From Haliotis rufescens (lineage: Eukaryota), in NCBI RefSeq assembly GCF_023055435.1, contig NW_025963891.1, forward strand, positions 5,828,001 through 5,892,000: 64,000 nucleotides of DNA. The letters run 5' to 3'. How positions within the stretch are numbered: the first letter of the stretch is position 1; every line of letters starts with the position of its first letter. The notes under the pieces were generated by a model, which made no database searches, was not told the DNA's origin, and saw only the letters and a list, made by a program, of their open reading frames with translations. The position numbers were made by a program, and so were the translations under genes. Positions 41 to 8,082 of this stretch are shown piece after piece.

Positions 41-412
41 GGTAGTACTGTCCAGTGATCCTTTACATGGACTATATGCAATGACCCCGCCCCACATCTA
101 TACAGACCGACGTCCAAATCTGTCATGTTACCTTACGTTGACGTTCGTTAGGATGCCTCCAGACACGTCAAAGCCTATCCAGAAAGACAAGAGGAAAAAT
201 CTGGAATCCCTGAAAACATTGCACGAGACCATCTGCGATTCCCCCAGTTTCTATGCTCTAAGGTCGCCGTGCAAGCGGACGATTTCTTATCGTCTGTACA
301 GTTACTTAAACTCTTGAGGCCTGGCGTGATTTGATTGGCTGTTTGGCTCGATTTCTTGAAAGATCCCGGATTTATGTTGTTTACCTAGGGTACCCTGTGC
401 AGGGACGATCAT
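41..412. repeat. About 380-bp direct duplication, copy 1 (copy 2 at about 7691-8082)
   Basis: Near-identical sequence GGTAGTACTGTCCAGTGAT...GACGATCATT at both positions. Confidence 0.9.
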
Positions 413-589
413 TGCATTGCCTGGCCCAGTTCAGCTAACGTAGCGGATGGCCTTTGACGTCTGCGTACACGTCTCCCGATCATGTCGCAGACGTGCTCTA
501 TGCGGGAACGGTCAGGACTCATGGCTGGCCATTGCATTCTGGTGATGTTTTGCTGCTGCGGTCACGGTGGGCACGAGCGTTGTCGTCTT

Positions 590-720
590 GAATATTGCAG
601 CAATATCACGGCGGGGGACACCAGAAAAGGGCTTCACACATTGTACCCATGTCGGGAATCGAACCCGGGTCTTCGGCGTGACGAGCTAACGCTTTAACCA
701 GAAGGCTAGCCGACCGCCCT
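590..720 (-). mobile_element. tRNA-derived SINE (family 1), 3'-truncated
   Basis: Near-identical to 4265-4386. Confidence 0.85.
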
Positions 721-1630
721 CGAGGCGCGGGTAAAGGGAGATAACCATATAAGACAGGCCTACTGTAAAACACTCGAACACTTTCAGGCCATTTTTCCGA
801 AATATTGGGTATACACAGGAACTCGTTATTGGTCAGTAAATAAAAATATATACCCCCCCTATATGTAAGTAGAGAAATGGAGCGTCACTCGCCATCTTGC
901 CTGTTTGTTAACATTCGATATCCACGGCGATTTTTGTATTATAAGCTTATTGACAAGCGCATTTCTTGCCGTAGATTGATCGATAATACATTTCTACACA
1001 TGTACAAGTCATCTACATTCGAACAATGTCCCTTACTTACCGAAATATCGACAGTTTATTTCGCTACCTGGGAAAATGTTACCAACCCCGAGCGGAAGTA
1101 AATTTCAAACGCGGGCAAAATCGAGCGAGCCACCTGATTGGCTGAAAATACGCAGCCCTCTAATTAAAGAAATTAGTGCGAAATTTGAAGACAGTTATCT
1201 GGAGCGACAGCAGAATCTAAAAAATGACATCAGATAATTTCTTCAAATGGTAAATATTTATTATGAATATGTTTTTCATTTTATAATATACTTGTCATCT
1301 AAAGCTTATCTATTATTAGCTGGTGAATTTTAAATTTACATCACTATATTAATATAATAGGCACATTTTCATGTATACTGCCTGTGCCTTATGACATTAT
1401 GATTACTGGTCAAGCAGATTGAAAATGAATAAAGTGAACATTTCAAGTTAATATTTATCATGAATGCAAAGTAATAAATCTATTTAAGAATAATAAGTAA
1501 ATTACAACATTACATGATAATATGAATATCACAAACACCCAAATCTCATGATGTGCCATTATAATATATGAAATTCTGAATTTTTACCAATGGCAGCTAT
1601 ATTGCGATGTTACAATAATTCAATTTTCAG

Positions 1631-2290
1631 TTATGTAAAGTTCTTGAAACATTCTTGTACATGAAAAGTATGTTGAAGATAGCAAAAGTACTAAACCAGT
1701 TGAAGAGATTTTCCAGAAATTTTGTGACAACTTTGGTCACAGATCAAAAGTGTTTGTCGGAAAATATATAAAAAAATGCTTTTCCAAATATCACCACAAC
1801 CAGGCACCGAAAACCTGGTGATTGGACAAAAAAACATCACGGTTTACCGTGGCATCAATGTGAGATCTGAACAGACACAAAACATTGAATTTGCTGCAAT
1901 ATCTGATAACATTCCAAAAGACTATTTTGTACTGCATACTCTATAACTGTTGGAAGGCAGACAGGATTATCCTGTAATGGGAACATGATATATTTACAAG
2001 TGAGATTTTCTACTGGTGGGCATGTACATCTTTCCGTCAGTGGTACAGTAATAAATGACACTTTTGGTATTCAGTCTATACATTACGACTCAAAAAAACG
2101 TAACTCATTCTTTTCGACACTGAATGTGACAAGATACTGTCAGGGCATATCTCCTAACAGAATATCAGATGAGAAAGAAAATATTGTTCTTCAGCTAAAT
2201 TTTGAGAAGGAACCCATTGCATACTCTGCTAACTGTTTGAAGGTATTATCTTTGAATTGTTTAAAGTCAACAGTAACATGTCAGAACTGT
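1631..2290 (+). pseudogene. Degenerate TE-borne ORF: winged-helix (RFX-like) segment followed by a Cys-containing segment
   Basis: Across frameshifts reads YVEDSKSTKPVEEIFQKFCDNFGHRSKVFVGKYIK / AFPNITTTRHRKPGDWTK / NITVYRGI, then ORF 1985-2320 with YCQG...YSANCLKVL...TCQNC. Confidence 0.4.
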
Positions 2291-2425
2291 AGATTCCATT
2301 TCTCTTCAGTCTCTCCGTAATTTCCTTGATAAGAACCGTTTTTCCTGTGCCAGCCTGGCCAGATTAGAGTGTTGTGTCCATCTTTGATCAAATTCCATGC
2401 AAACACTTGTTCTTAAGTCAAAGCT
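2290..2425 (-). pseudogene. PIF1-type SF1B helicase N-terminal relic (Q motif plus Walker A)
   Basis: Manual translation with one stop and one frameshift: LT*EQVFAWNLIKDGHNTLI / GQAGTGKTVLIKEITERLKRNG. Confidence 0.65.
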
Positions 2426-3245
2426 GGTTGCACATGTGTTGTTGTTTTCACGCTGTCTTGACATAAGTAGGTCAGCCAATCAGGTGGCTCGCTCGATTCT
2501 GCCCGCGTTTGAAATTTACTTCCGCTCGGGGTTGGTAACATTTTCCCAGGTCGCGAAATAAACTGTCGATATTTCGGTAAGTAAGGGACATTGTTCGAAT
2601 GTAGATGACTTGTACATGTGTAGAAATGTATTATCGATCAATCTACGGCCAGAAATGCGCTTGTCAATAAGCTTATAATAAAAAAATCGCCGTGGATATC
2701 GAATGTAAACAAACAGGCAAGATGGCGAGTGACGCTCCTTTTCTCCACTTACATATAGGGGGTATATATTTTTATTTACTGACCAATAACGAGTTCCTGT
2801 GTGGGTATACCCTCGCGTAACCTTGATTCGTGGATATAAGGAAAGTTCACCCAAATTCGTGGTTTTAATGTCCGATTTTGTTTTGTATACTCACTGATCA
2901 TTTAATTCATCTATTAAACTATAAGAAAATGACGAAGATTCCACTCGTGACTGAAAAGTTTGTTTACCGAAGCCATTTGCATTCATCAGCCATTCATGTG
3001 CACACAAAATGTGACGTCACCTTGATTCGTGGATTACGTAGTAGATTATTGTATCGCTATGTACGAAAGCCCAGTACCGTAACTGTGTAATATTTTTTTA
3101 TGAATTCGAATCTATACCTACCAGCATTTTTGTGTCGGCTGATAACAGTTGAAGAGCATAGATATTTAACACACAACTCCAAAACGAATCTTGTCAATAA
3201 AGTTATGTACCCTATTTACAGGTAAGTTTGTGTCCTCTTTCAGTC

Positions 3246-5238
3246 CTACTCTTCCGATGGTTTGCATGGCAGACCATGGCAAGGGCAATAAAACGTGTCA
3301 TGCGTCCGAAGCACGCGCACTGGACAACAATACTGCAAGTGCACCCAGTGGTTACAGTCATGATACATGCACTGCCCCCATTGTACGAAAAACAGTGATG
3401 TGCATTGGGCCAGTTCAGCGGGCTGAAAGTGATGACACACGCAACATGTTTTGTCATCGGATATTGGCGAATCCTCACTGTCACTGCTGTATAGTAGATT
3501 GATCGCACCGGACGGTCCCGCTGCTGGCTCGGTGGTACTTTTATGTTTCTTTTGAGATTGTTTAGCATATGTATGTGACTTTGCTGGTCGTTTCTTTGTT
3601 GGTACTGGCTGTTTAGAAGTTGAACTTTTAACATAGTTTTTAACTTGAATTTCTATCTCTGGTTCAGTTATGGCTTTGCCGCTAACGATCTTGTGGATAG
3701 ATCTACGTGGTTTTCTTTGCTTCTTCTGAATGACGGGAAGCTGGTCAACAAAGAATTGGGTTTGGTCAAAGTTAGTGACGATATTTTCTTTCTCAACGTT
3801 AGGGTTCGAACGTGGGCTGTGTACGTCGTCAGTAGCTGGTACTTGCTGCGACTTGTCTTCAACGTGTGATGCGTGGATAAAAGCAGCTGGTTGGAATGCA
3901 GATTTATAAATCATATCTGGCGAAAAGGGATAGATTCCAGACTTTCTGAATGCCGACTGCAAGTGACCAGGCGTTAAAGCAGCAGAATATGCCCTGCAGG
4001 CTACGGAGGCGATGTTATATCTGTTGACTGTGGTACCATCAGACTTCAATAGCTTGTGACATTCGGCATTGTAGATTTTTGTAAACGGACCGAAACATCC
4101 CACGTCCATTGGCTGCAAAATATTGTGTGAGCCGGGAGGACAAACAACACAATATTGTGATCTTTTGCCCAGTCTATCAGAGACGGAGAAATGTGCGACT
4201 TGTGGCCATCGTACAGAAGAGTGAATGAGTGAGTATGGTTTTACGCCGCTTTTAGCAATATTCCAGCAATATCACGGCGGGGGACACCAGAAATGGGCTT
4301 CACACATTTTACCCATGTCGGGAATCGAACCCGGGTCTTCGGCGTGACGAGCGAACGCTTTAACCACGAGGCTACCCGACCGCCCCTCGTACAGAAGAAG
4401 CAAAGGTCTATTCGGCGTTGCTGGAGATGCATATCGAAGGAAATGCCTGTCCAAGTAATCTTGGAATATAACACCATTTGACCATCCTGATTCAGAAACA
4501 GTTCCTTCACTTCCCGCTGTACAGCCTTCAAGCAATTCACTGCGCATTCTAGCTCCCGCAAATACAAAGAAAGGTGGAATAAATGTGCCCAGAGCGTTTC
4601 CACATCCCAAAAGTGTGACGACAGACGATCTCTCCGAAGAAATCTCGTAGGCCACGGAATTTCTTGAGCCAACAATTTTCGGTGCGACATGGGACTGGTT
4701 GATTCCTTTCTCGTCAACGTTATAAATTGCTTCTGGTCTTGATTGGAAACCGTATTTGTCCATAATCATGGCAAATTCATCAAAATATTTGTTGATGCAT
4801 TCCTCTGAACTTGCTTTGGCACGAAGTTCCGTGAGAGACTTGGCACTTCTAACTTTCAACTCTGGCCATCGCTCCAACAGACCATATAACCACTTGACAG
4901 ATAATGGATGGGACAGGTCACGTTTTCCTAACTGACAAGCAAAGTTAGACCCGACAACTTCCTTCCTGGTATATCCGTATCCGATGGATGCCATGTATGT
5001 CACATGGTCAACAAGTCTAGTTTCCTGCTCCGCATCAAAAATTGGAGTTGCACCTGACTTGACAGTGTCAACATTGATCTTGCCTTTTATCCTGTCTCTC
5101 AGTGTTTGCTCGGGTACAGAGAAGTTTAATGTCGCTCTATGAACTGCAACTTTATTGTTTTTGACTTCCAAGTAAGCATTAGTCAAAGCTGTAGGCGAAT
5201 AACTTTTGTATCCCTGTCGCGAAGGCGTCGGTGAACCC
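3246..5238 (-). pseudogene. pogo-type transposase (psq HTH, Tc5/CENP-B HTH, DDD core, C-terminal PHD-like finger), disrupted
   Basis: ORFs 4272-5186 and 3246-4118: VPEQTLRDRIKG, IYNVDEKG, LLLLY(D)GHKSH, LPAHT..ILQPMDVGCFGP, CCVC...WGQC..C.HWVH...C...CPC. Broken by a SINE at 4221-4386 and a frameshift near 4122. Confidence 0.88.
4221..4386 (-). mobile_element. tRNA-derived SINE (family 1), full length
   Basis: Minus strand has A box TAGCCTCGTGG, B box GGTTCGATTCC and a (CACT)n-type tail; 12-bp TSD TCGTACAGAAGA at 4209-4220 and 4387-4398. Confidence 0.92.
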
Positions 5239-5979
5239 TATGAAAATGAAAAAAAAGCTATACGAGATGGCCCGAAAATGTTTCCATAGATTTATAATTT
5301 TAACAGACGGCAGCACCTCAAGTCACGTGACTTATGTTAATTGACATCTACACAAGCAGGCGACGTGAGATGAGAAGGGTGGTGCTTACGGTATATATTT
5401 TATTTGATGTTTTGTAAATATGAAATTTGGTATTAGTGATCTAGGGCTATTTATCTCAGTGTTGGACATTTGGTTTTTCTGTACTTACGTGTAATGCAGC
5501 GATTCGGAATATTTTTGTCAGCAAGGCGTGACAGTGTGTACATCAAAAGCACCGCTGTGTGACGTCATACGAGACTTAATTAACGAGATATCACGATAAT
5601 TACCGCGATCCACGAATCAAGGTTATCCACGAAATTAGGTAACGGTACCTATGGGATGAGAATTTTTCCATTGTATCCCCTTCATCAGAAAAGGTGAATG
5701 TTCGAGTGGATTCCATGGTGTCTGGCCACTCTGACGTGTGTAGGACACGGAAATAGAAACTCAAAGCGCATGCCGGTTTCAGACACGGACTGTAAAATGC
5801 GGAAGATAAGGCGAAATCAACATAAAAGATACTAAAATACTTGTCCTGCAACATGGATACGTGTGCTCTTTTGTGTCACTGTCGGCCCATTTTTTAAAAT
5901 GCAAATCTAAAATACACAATAGCTCTTCCCATTTTGAATATAGAACAAATATGGCGAATAACGATGAAATGAGCGAGAG

Positions 5980-6067
5980 CACAGGAGTCCGTATCTAAAA
6001 ATAGACACCCTCATGCATAATCCTGAATATGCATGAGGGCGTCTATTTTTAGATACGGACTCCTGTG
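5980..6067. mobile_element. 88-bp hairpin MITE, P-like termini
   Basis: 40-bp arms (one mismatch) with an 8-nt loop; termini CACAGGAG...CTCCTGTG; 7-bp TSD GCGAGAG at 5973-5979 and 6068-6074. Confidence 0.85.
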
Positions 6068-6402
6068 GCGAGAGAGATAAAGTAATGGTCGGACCCGGAT
6101 ATTGAAAACGGAACTGAAAAATAGATATTTGCCCCTTCTATCATCAAACATTCATTACATTTGGAAGTATTGTATTCAGTGTTCAATACTAAGAAGTGAT
6201 ATACGCACGTCGTATAACTATGAAACTATACCGTGGGACATTGATTGTTTTTGTGAAGTTCTTTTTCAACATTTCACTGATTATTGATGATGTATGTAAG
6301 AAGCGACTGTGTTGACAATGGCGGAGGTAGAAGGATGCGAGATCGAGAAATCGACTAGGAAAGCGAGAAAATGTAAATCTTTACGTCAGGTTTCAGCTAA
6401 AG

Positions 6403-7537
6403 ACTGCAGTATTTTGGTCCCCACTTCGGAAGGAACGTTTTTACGTGTTTACGGAAGTTGTCGAATGAAAAACGTTCCACGCATGCGCAGTTCGTTATTT
6501 ACGGTCGAAGCGAGAGGATTTGTTGGCCGCCATTTTTCTACCGAACGCTGTCTGCAGTTCAGTATTTTCTTACACAGACAACACACGGGGGGTACAAGGG
6601 GGGTTTGTCCCCCCTTGTCAAAATATTAAAGTAAAAATGGGGGGTAAAGGGGGGTCACACCCCCCTTTTTTCAAATAAATCGCACGACGGTAAGTTCATT
6701 CTGTTACTTGAACAATATATTTTGTTGGGCGGACAACACAGCGGGGTTCAAGGCAGGTACAACCCCACCTTTATGACATTTTTAAAGAAAAATACGGGGG
6801 GTAAAGGGGGAGGATCCCCCTTTTTCAAATAAATCGCAATATAGTATAACTTCATTCATAAAAGCATGTGAATTTTCATAGGAAAATTATCATCGATAGA
6901 TACTTTCTCATTCAAACAATTCATTTGAAACGTTGAATTCGTTTTGACTCATATAGATTCTAGGACCTAAGTCTGTGGATCCATCTAGACCTAGTTCAAT
7001 TTCTTTTTCTGCTTCTTTTTCATCTTTTTCTTAAACGATCATTTTGCTTCCTAAGTTTAATAAATGTAAACACAGCCGGTGAACTGATCAATTGAACAAC
7101 TGAAATATTTCTTTTCTGATAATGTTTTGAACAAAATAATTGTCATACATTCCCGCATTCGCCCCATACCTATGCAAAGATGTCTTCACTGTACGCCAAG
7201 TCGACTGTTTTATTTGTACAAGCCACACTTTATGAATTTACAAGTTATGAGCGAAGTTGCTTTCGTAGTAACGAGTCCATATAAGGAAAGTCACATGATC
7301 AGACACGTGACGTCCTACGTCATTTATGTCCCGCCCACAAACAACAAAAAGTTGACAGTTCAATAATTCGGCTTCACTTTCTATCGTAAAACTCTCTACC
7401 CCAACAGAGGCGGAGTTTTAGACCATACTTTTCACGTCCAGCTCATTTTTGGGGTCCTTTTTGCTTCCGTACTGAAACTGCCGAAGGCAGCGGTTGCCTT
7501 ACGGAAACCCCCGAAGTGGGGACCCAAATACTGCAGT
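6403..7537. mobile_element. Non-autonomous inverted-repeat element, superfamily unassigned
   Basis: ACTGCAGTATTTTGGTCCCCACTTCGG at 6403 is inverted at about 7511-7537; internal G/C-tract duplications at 6585-6840; no clear TSD. Confidence 0.55.
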
Positions 7538-7690
7538 TGACCCCAATAGGTTCAAGCAGGTGGGTACCGAAATGATTGCATTTCCATCACATTTCCATCG
7601 GAATAAGATGTGAAAAATCGCCCTAAAATAGCGATTTGATTGTAAACAAATCATCAAACGTACACACAGGTTAAGAACATCAGGGTGATG

Positions 7691-8082
7691 GTAGTACTGT
7701 CCAGTGATTCTTTACATGGACTATATGCAGTGACGTTCTGGCGGCCGTAATGACCCCGCCCCACATCTTTACAGACCGACGTCCAAATCTGTCATGTTAC
7801 CTTACGTTGACGTTCGTTAGGATGCCTCCAGACACGTCAAAGCCTATCCAGAAAGACAAGAGGAAAAATCTGGAATTCCTGAAAACATTGCACGAGACCA
7901 TCTGCGATTCCCCCAGTGTCTATGCTCTAAGGTCGCCGTGCAAGCGGACGATTTCTTATCGTCTGTACAGTAACTTAAACTCTTGAGGCCTGGCGTGATT
8001 TGATTGGCTGTTCGGCTCGATTTCTTGAAAGATCCCGGATTTATGTTGTTTACCTAGGGTACCCTGTGCAGAGACGATCATT
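7691..8082. repeat. About 390-bp direct duplication, copy 2
   Basis: Matches 41-412 with one short indel. Confidence 0.9.

Follow-up and report, generated by a model that had tools for sequence, protein, structure and literature searches.

Transposons of the P superfamily (e.g., the Drosophila P element, THAP9, Galileo, and 1360) typically have CANRG termini and 7–8-bp target-site duplications (TSDs), and long terminal inverted repeats (TIRs) are already known from Galileo. PIF1-like helicases in transposons are otherwise tied to Helitrons, which have no TIRs and no TSD, end in 5'-TC...CTRR-3', and carry Rep fused upstream of the helicase. Helicases of other families accompany some DDE transposons. 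AcademH is a DDE lineage with a non-PIF1 helicase. KolobokH and Kolobok-1_CCri encode a RecQ helicase, which one of the lineages carries on the complementary strand (PMC9587614). Here, we describe a 64,000-nt stretch of the red abalone Haliotis rufescens (NCBI RefSeq assembly GCF_023055435.1, contig NW_025963891.1, positions 5,828,001–5,892,000 of the forward strand; hereafter, the window), in which positions 814–2801 hold a 1,988-bp element with CACAG ends and an 8-bp TSD. This element is very probably a non-autonomous, internally deleted P-superfamily copy, the parent of which carried a co-inherited pair of genes encoding a transposase and a PIF1 helicase.

The abalone elements share with the P superfamily an RNase H fold with an insertion domain, CANRG ends, 7–8-bp TSDs, and frequent internally deleted copies and MITEs (miniature inverted-repeat transposable elements), whereas they differ in having a predicted RFX-type winged helix and a Cys4 motif instead of THAP, and an integral second gene for a PIF1 helicase with a PHD finger. 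As do Helitrons and Helentrons (Rep-Hel), they encode a PIF1-like helicase of superfamily 1B (SF1B), but this gene is separate and lies in elements with 332-bp TIRs, CACAG ends, and TSDs, with no HUH/Rep domain found in the open reading frames (ORFs) scanned. KolobokH, Kolobok-1_CCri, and AcademH follow the same design principle, i.e., a DDE cut-and-paste element with an accessory helicase, although their transposase superfamilies and helicase families are different ones and the pairing is not homologous. Cellular PIF1 proteins (yeast Pif1/Rrm3, human, Drosophila) have in common with the element helicases the core, the 2B domain, Walker A, and FGGxQ...GDxxQLPPV; the element helicases differ in their ~400-aa extension, their PHD finger, their placement in a clade of their own, and their location within TIR-bounded multi-copy elements.

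The window copy is laid out as follows (positions in the window):

806–813, no strand: left TSD copy TGGGTATA, identical to 2802–2809
814–1145, plus strand: left TIR, 332 bp, terminus CACAGGAACTCG, one of the inverted-repeat arms
890–898, plus strand: subterminal motif CGCCATCTT within GTCACTCGCCATCTTG, from the TIR alignment of families F1, F4, and F2
1092–1099, plus strand: ETS-like GCGGAAGT; CGGAAGT is kept by F1 and F2 in their TIRs and by F4 in its right arm
1137–1141, plus strand: ATTGG (inverted CCAAT) within CTGATTGG, at about position 322 of the F1 and F2 TIRs
1146–1656, plus strand: non-coding leader on the transposase side, read from the sequence and collinear with the long copy L031
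1657–2293, plus strand: relic of the transposase N-terminus (about residues 1–221; tblastn E 2e-22)
2293–2295, no strand: internal-deletion junction, joining long-copy positions 1351 and 7370
2295–2421, minus strand: relic of the PIF1 helicase N-terminus, residues 9–51, 85% identical to the L031 helicase
2422–2471, minus strand: 5' leader of the helicase gene, from the coding relic up to the TIR, with a disrupted start-codon region
2472–2801, minus strand: right TIR, 330 bp, terminus CGAGTTCCTGTG, the other inverted-repeat arm
2802–2809, no strand: right TSD copy TGGGTATA, identical to 806–813

An earlier reading of the window letters (hereafter, the sequence-only reading) had described 330-bp TIRs that start with CACAG, an 8-bp TSD, and YY1-like, ETS-like, and CCAAT/ATTGG motifs within the TIR, and all of these features were found. 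The inverted arms are 97% complementary over 302 nt (844–1145 and 2472–2773) and 96% complementary at their outer ends (813–862 and 2753–2802), and the right TIR holds mirror copies of all three short motifs. The first of these, CGCCATCTT, keeps its position in three diverged families and may serve for binding of the transposase or as a promoter element of YY1-like type, and the transposase-side leader contains a possible GT...AG intron at about 1250–1630.

Both coding relics are broken. The plus-strand relic aligns in three frames, with stops, to an intact 772-aa transposase of a sister family, and it spans an RFX-type winged helix, a beta-rich domain, and a Cys motif (C...C...CxxC). It had previously been taken for a winged-helix/Cys protein; the relic is real, and it is the transposase's own N-terminus with an RFX-type fold rather than a separate protein. 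The minus-strand relic (2421–2295) reads LT*EQVFAWNLIKDGHNTLI / SGQAGTGKTVLIKEITERLKRNG, with one stop and one frameshift, and retains the Walker A sequence GQAGTGKT. Its earlier assignment to PIF1 agrees with the identity to residues 9–51 of the L031 helicase ORF, and Pfam PIF1 matches the intact homologous ORF. The minus-strand ATG noted earlier at 2464–2462 is out of the helicase frame, and the L031 ORF opens at an ATG further in (MCKPRGFKMTEEQ). The two relics, described as meeting near 2290, abut at 2293|2295. Numbered from the left end of L031, the window copy consists of positions 1–1351 joined to 7370–7889. It retains both TIRs, ~220 broken transposase codons, and ~45 broken helicase codons, and it is mobile solely with transposase supplied in trans.

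Comparison of the TIR with the whole genome gave 42 scored matches among 398 candidates. The 40-nt terminus (≤3 mismatches) occurs 164 times per strand, and many occurrences are paired about 100–120 bp apart as MITEs. The paired-TIR elements measure 1.9–3.2 kb, with the addition of one 7,889-bp copy (L031). Intact 8-bp TSDs flank the window copy and four other loci (L033, L034, L035, and L037), and L032 has a 7/8 match; the TSD comparison gave no matching duplication at L031, L036, and L044. The window junction is common to the window copy, L036, L037, and L038, and its 40-nt junction sequence occurs four times in the genome. Because these four copies lie at different sites, and the window copy and L037 have different intact TSDs, the deleted form itself has transposed. 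In a different sample (organism A), a contig of 2,290 nt runs across the same junction with 33 differences; therefore, the deleted form occurs beyond the Haliotis rufescens assembly. The other four derivatives have junctions at 1286|5420, 1377|5748, 1091|5821, and 1367|5779 (L031 numbering), each of which joins the 5' part of the transposase gene to the middle of the helicase gene, and each derivative has its own 8-bp TSD (a 7/8 match in one). Four differing junctions that link both genes are the pattern expected from independent internal deletions of a two-gene parent. The view of the window copy as a deletion derivative is thus upheld by its junction and by its collinearity with L031.

The genes of this parent are found in the long copies. 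L031 contains TNP-like_RNaseH_N ORFs on the plus strand and PIF1 and Pif1_2B ORFs on the minus strand, and the region that separates both ORF sets shows homology to the helicase's C-terminal extension. The second long copy (L047/L050) is collinear with L031 over positions 290–7186 (86–94% identity), and the two ends of the window copy align collinearly with each of these long copies. The parent postulated in the sequence-only reading, a large cut-and-paste P-like element with a transposase and a PIF1 helicase in convergent orientation, corresponds to what L031 and L047 carry on their opposite strands.

Sister lineages of the element in the Haliotis rufescens genome also hold both genes. Among 21 genome-wide matches to the transposase core, 10 have a helicase match within 2–13 kb, compared to a chance expectation of ~0.001 helicase neighbours per transposase locus (~40 helicase loci, 1.33 Gb). 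All eight loci that were fetched, representing about six diverged lineages, hold both genes, and seven of the eight show a tail-to-tail arrangement, in which a TIR is followed by the transposase, the helicase extension, the helicase core, and the other TIR. Most lineages have this convergent layout, and family F3 is the exception. Complete elements measure about 7 kb without later insertions, and CACAGG ends, which are CANRG-type termini of the P superfamily, were found in four families.

The C57 element (14.1 kb) has 341-bp TIRs (98.8% identical) with ends CACAGGTACTGG and a TSD of CCTTGAAG/CTTTGAAG (7/8 match). Its 772-aa transposase ORF is intact, and insertions of long interspersed nuclear elements (LINEs) interrupt its helicase gene. 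One insertion is a non-LTR (long terminal repeat) retrotransposon (L039 8194–9606 and L040 8–3292; ORFs of 470 and 1,094 aa), identified from its long ORFs alone, and a second LINE-like fragment lies at L040 7113–9789. The F3 element (C168:5446600–5464054; 17,455 bp) has ends CACAGGAGTCCG, a 7-bp TSD, and TIRs that extend over about 300 bp and differ at one position. Three F3 copies are 99% identical over about 8–10 kb and have long open frames (806/829 aa helicase). The first exon of the F3 helicase (residues 1–33) lies 417 bp from the left end and is followed by a 6.9-kb intron (NCBI models P0018 and P0138). About 160 MITE pairs of the F3 family exist genome-wide, including an 88-bp MITE within the window (5980–6067) with ends CACAGGAGTCCG and the 7-bp TSD GCGAGAG. 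The 17.5-kb F3 element also contains tandem helicase fragments (94–99% identical) after the helicase gene (C168:5456.5–5460k; L041 8503–10000 and L054 1–1900) and a nested mariner-like transposase fragment (L054 1942–2292). The sequence-only reading had named full-length copies with their own 8-bp TSD as support; the two long copies of the window's family have no verifiable TSD, and sister elements with TSDs were found in C57 (7/8) and F3 (7 bp).

These loci bear on whether the pairing could be a one-off nesting or chimera, in which a Helitron or other helicase fragment came to lie inside one P element and the window copy would carry no information on a two-gene parent. The lack of a matching TSD and the private ~0.9-kb insertion in L031, together with the known association of PIF1 with Helitrons, would fit such an event. 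However, both genes occur at eight loci in about six lineages, and both genes are covered by four deletion derivatives that arose independently, each with a TSD of its own. The ORFs scanned have no Rep/HUH domain, Helraiser is only a distant match, and adjacent gene records exist in two bivalves. Segmental copies of a single event are excluded by the 35–86% protein divergence among the two-gene loci. We regard nesting as extremely improbable, and the one-off capture considered in the sequence-only reading is contradicted across these lineages.

The transposase is a predicted P/THAP9-type DDE transposase, based on its domains and its modelled fold. In database searches, for which ORF pieces were run separately, Pfam identified TNP-like_RNaseH_N (PF21787; E 7.5e-14) and, in the F3 lineage, the GTP-binding insertion domain (PF21788; E 1.8e-5, which passes the curated cutoff), together with weak matches to RNaseH_C (PF21789) and the P-element helix-turn-helix domain (PF12017); all domains are in canonical order. 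The conserved motifs are LDEM, DGAS, and SDxxEN (the last taken from the consensus line), and D384/E385/M386 and D475/G476 are near-invariant. An AlphaFold model built from 14 sequences (predicted local distance difference test score [pLDDT] 78.9) had as its top Foldseek matches the Drosophila P transposase strand-transfer complex (6pe2/6p5a; E 2.4e-21, target template-modelling [TM] score 0.78–0.81), and the next matches (RAG1 and Hermes) were far weaker (E ~1e-5, TM ~0.3). The hAT, Kolobok, and Helitron groups were considered as superfamily assignments and are excluded by the fold, the ends, and the lack of Rep.

The N-terminus of this transposase differs from that of canonical relatives. 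No Pfam match to THAP was found in the transposase even at E 10, whereas a canonical relative (P0017) does carry THAP; this domain is typical of the P superfamily and is treated here as non-defining. A model of residues 1–235 (pLDDT 85.4) has three parts. Residues 1–72 adopt a winged-helix fold of the RFX type (1dp7: Z 10.5, root-mean-square deviation 1.8 Å over 69 residues; RFX5 8zjr: Z 10.4; next structure: Z 7.0), residues 78–166 form a generic alpha/beta domain in the model, and the invariant cysteines are C169, C202, C217, and C220. Foldseek comparison of the N-terminal model with RFX gave target TM scores of 0.68–0.70 at E 0.03, and the transposase has no match to Pfam RFX_DNA_binding, placing the likeness at the level of the fold. 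For the RFX domain, which the sequence-only reading had named for testing, the match lies in structure and not in Pfam sequence. According to the model, an RFX-type winged helix with a shared fold, together with the Cys4 motif, appears to replace THAP at the N-terminus.

The second gene is predicted to encode a PIF1-family SF1B helicase. Helicase P0018 matches Pfam PIF1 (PF05970; E 7.9e-27) and Pif1_2B (PF21530; E 1.3e-9), and it has the Walker A motif GxGKT and FGGxQ..GDxxQLPPV. The helicase matches yeast Pif1 (E 1.4e-62 over residues 3–335) and human PIF1 (E 3e-52). The match to Helraiser reaches only E 2.5e-11, and, as a correction to the link with Helitrons in the sequence-only reading, the helicase is not Helitron-like: it is closer to cellular PIF1. 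No Rep/HUH or Helitron_like_N domain was found in any element ORF scanned. A C-terminal extension of ~400 aa, to which no fold is assigned, follows the helicase core, and a PHD finger is terminal in most lineages.

Phylogenetic comparison shows that the two genes have diverged together. Trees were built from tblastn pieces strung together per locus, with X at stops, and the transposase and helicase trees recover the same sister pairs, (F1a, F1b), (F2, F6), and (F4, F7), with F3 remote; the helicase tree includes two loci with short pieces only, which makes its deeper nodes tentative. The element helicases and bivalve helicases form one long-stemmed clade (Shimodaira–Hasegawa-like approximate likelihood-ratio test 100), apart from fish and fungal PIF1. 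Full-length helicase relatives (~38% identity), most with a terminal PHD finger, exist in Saccostrea, Sinanodonta, Tegillarca, and Mytilus, with partial matches in Argopecten and Pinctada. Relatives of the transposase were found in Mytilus, Mizuhopecten, Pecten, Sinanodonta, Tegillarca, Lingula, corals, and Ptychodera. Consecutive gene records encode both proteins in Tegillarca granosa (KUTeg_016935/KUTeg_016936; KAJ8306390.1/KAJ8306391.1) and Mytilus coruscus (CAC5424370.1/CAC5424371.1). A second M. coruscus gene pair lies on one 330,616-bp contig, and the corresponding abalone record pair is LOC125372344/LOC125372343. Because the genes are co-located, their trees match, and their records are adjacent, the gene pair is shown to be old, assembled once, and inherited together across gastropod and bivalve lineages. 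Three proteins labelled 'MAG: Sedimenticola sp.' (P0181, P0183, and P0189) share about 50% identity with the P-like transposase of molluscs, and they are probably bivalve host DNA that was binned into a symbiont genome.

The same data bear on whether the helicase is a passenger, i.e., a host PIF1-like gene that was captured once and has no role in the spread of the element, or that serves against silencing via its PHD finger. The position of the helicase clade, closer to cellular PIF1 than to Helitron helicases, is consistent with capture of a cellular gene. A useless gene would be expected to decay, however, and the helicase co-diverges with the transposase, keeps its long open frames (806/829 aa) in three young copies that are 99% identical, and is conserved over its full length, including the extension and the PHD finger, from gastropods to bivalves at about 38% identity. 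A passenger helicase of either kind is in our view improbable. Retention and co-divergence of the helicase indicate selection for a transposition-linked function, without favouring any particular one.

One such function would be in the repair of the donor site. P-type excision would leave a double-strand gap at the donor site, which would be refilled from the sister chromatid through long-tract repair synthesis. This synthesis would often abort, and the break would then be joined, creating internal deletions like that of the window copy. Cellular PIF1 has a known role in promoting repair synthesis over long tracts, as in break-induced replication. If the element's own PIF1 drove the migration of the displacement loop, synthesis would be processive and the 7–17-kb element would be restored at the donor site; the helicase would be held on chromatin by its PHD finger. 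In Drosophila, after P{wa} excision, host PIF1 promotes long-range synthesis across the 14-kb gap without POL32 (bioRxiv 10.1101/554550). We tentatively suggest that self-encoded PIF1 might favour full gap repair and restoration after excision. It is conceivable, at a similarly tentative level, that a P-type clade of molluscs (perhaps also of other marine invertebrates) carries PIF1 for processive gap repair and is thereby effectively replicative.

The helicase could instead act in transposition proper, by melting the TIRs or staggered cleavage sites, by loading or stripping the transpososome, or in a copy-out step. To our knowledge, canonical P transposase requires no helicase in vitro, and MITEs of ~90–120 bp as well as deletion derivatives move without a helicase of their own, which count against this role, even though both facts are compatible with help in trans. 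In its favour, the helicase gene is kept beside the transposase in every lineage and co-diverges with it, and other DDE lineages carry helicases without an assigned role, such as KolobokH with RecQ (PMC9587614). On balance, we consider a role in transposition rather unlikely.

Expression of the pair may depend on the TIRs. The helicase ORF has its own ATG beside the TIR, and the distance from the inner TIR edge to this start is 37 bp in L031, 55 bp in C57, and about 85 bp in F3. Because the helicase gene starts this close to the TIR (8–90 bp inside it) in three lineages, the helicase promoter is probably located within the TIR. The F1 and F2 TIRs are otherwise unalignable, but three motifs are found at matching positions: GTCACYCGCCATMTTG (~75–95), CGGAAGT (~265–280), and CTGATTGG (~322). 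The F4 TIRs have the first motif in both arms and CGGAAGT in the right arm only. This conservation fits promoter or transposase-binding elements and, like the nearby start codons, lends indirect support only to the sequence-only reading's proposal of both TIRs as inward promoters. A start inside the TIR (MLPTPSGS...) that would be common to both genes was also considered and is not general: this ATG is in frame with the helicase in the window subfamily (with an open fusion in L037), out of the helicase frame in all other copies, and followed by stops on the transposase side.

Several observations weigh against a co-inherited transposase–helicase pair as the origin of the window copy, or against the function proposed for it. 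The window's own family has just two long copies, both degenerate and without a verifiable TSD, and L031 has a private insertion of about 0.9 kb. One flank is shared by these copies at 87% identity (right flank of L031, 8390–8886, vs. L050 3267–3770), and the L050 flank copy, 310 kb from L031, abuts the opposite element end; the two long copies may therefore represent one insertion that was duplicated and then inverted between its TIRs. The gene order of F3 differs: its transposase gene is contained in intron 1 of the helicase gene and is read from the other strand. The bivalve pairing is read from consecutive accession numbers and locus tags. Reads (from runs of uncertain kind) cover the element and its flanks equally, and a microRNA sequencing run contributed eight reads. 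The requirement for host PIF1 in flies was seen only in the absence of POL32 (bioRxiv 10.1101/554550). The sequence-only reading knew of no described P lineage with this layout; likewise, our literature search, which had Repbase and Dfam outside its scope, found no published description of an accessory PIF1 gene in P elements, and a survey of bivalve transposons does not mention a P-plus-PIF1 element.

The co-inherited pair changes how PIF1 genes in molluscs are to be read. PIF1 domains in mollusc genomes are routinely interpreted as Helitrons or odd host genes, whereas those described here belong to TIR elements. In two mollusc genome papers, PIF1 domains are listed as transposon-related or as unexplained hemizygous genes (PMC9646362; bioRxiv 10.1101/2020.09.15.298695). 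On the tentative reading of a mollusc clade that carries PIF1 for gap repair, many bivalve 'PIF1' or 'dispensable helicase' genes would be cargo of P-PIF1 elements and not Helitrons. The P superfamily gains a lineage in which a second gene is conserved and the DNA-binding domain is a different one. The parallel with the Kolobok and Academ helicase lineages suggests repeated recruitment of helicases by DDE transposons. The proposed role in repair would connect, in a concrete and testable way, a factor that a transposon encodes with the old problem of copy gain by cut-and-paste elements via donor-site repair, with a possible bearing on why P-type elements readily shed internal deletions. Since three 17.5-kb copies are 99% identical and keep long open frames, the element seems to have been active very recently in this farmed species.

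Two repeats occur in the sequence around the window copy. A 129-bp repeat flanks the element (window positions 591–719 and 4257–4385; copies 95% identical), is highly abundant with extreme depth in three contig runs, and resembles a short interspersed nuclear element. A tRNA origin was considered for this repeat, in which ARAGORN called no tRNA. To the right of the element, a 20-nt direct repeat, CGT(A/C)ACCTTGATTCGTGGAT, is present at 2816–2835 and 3015–3034, with a spacing of 199 bp.

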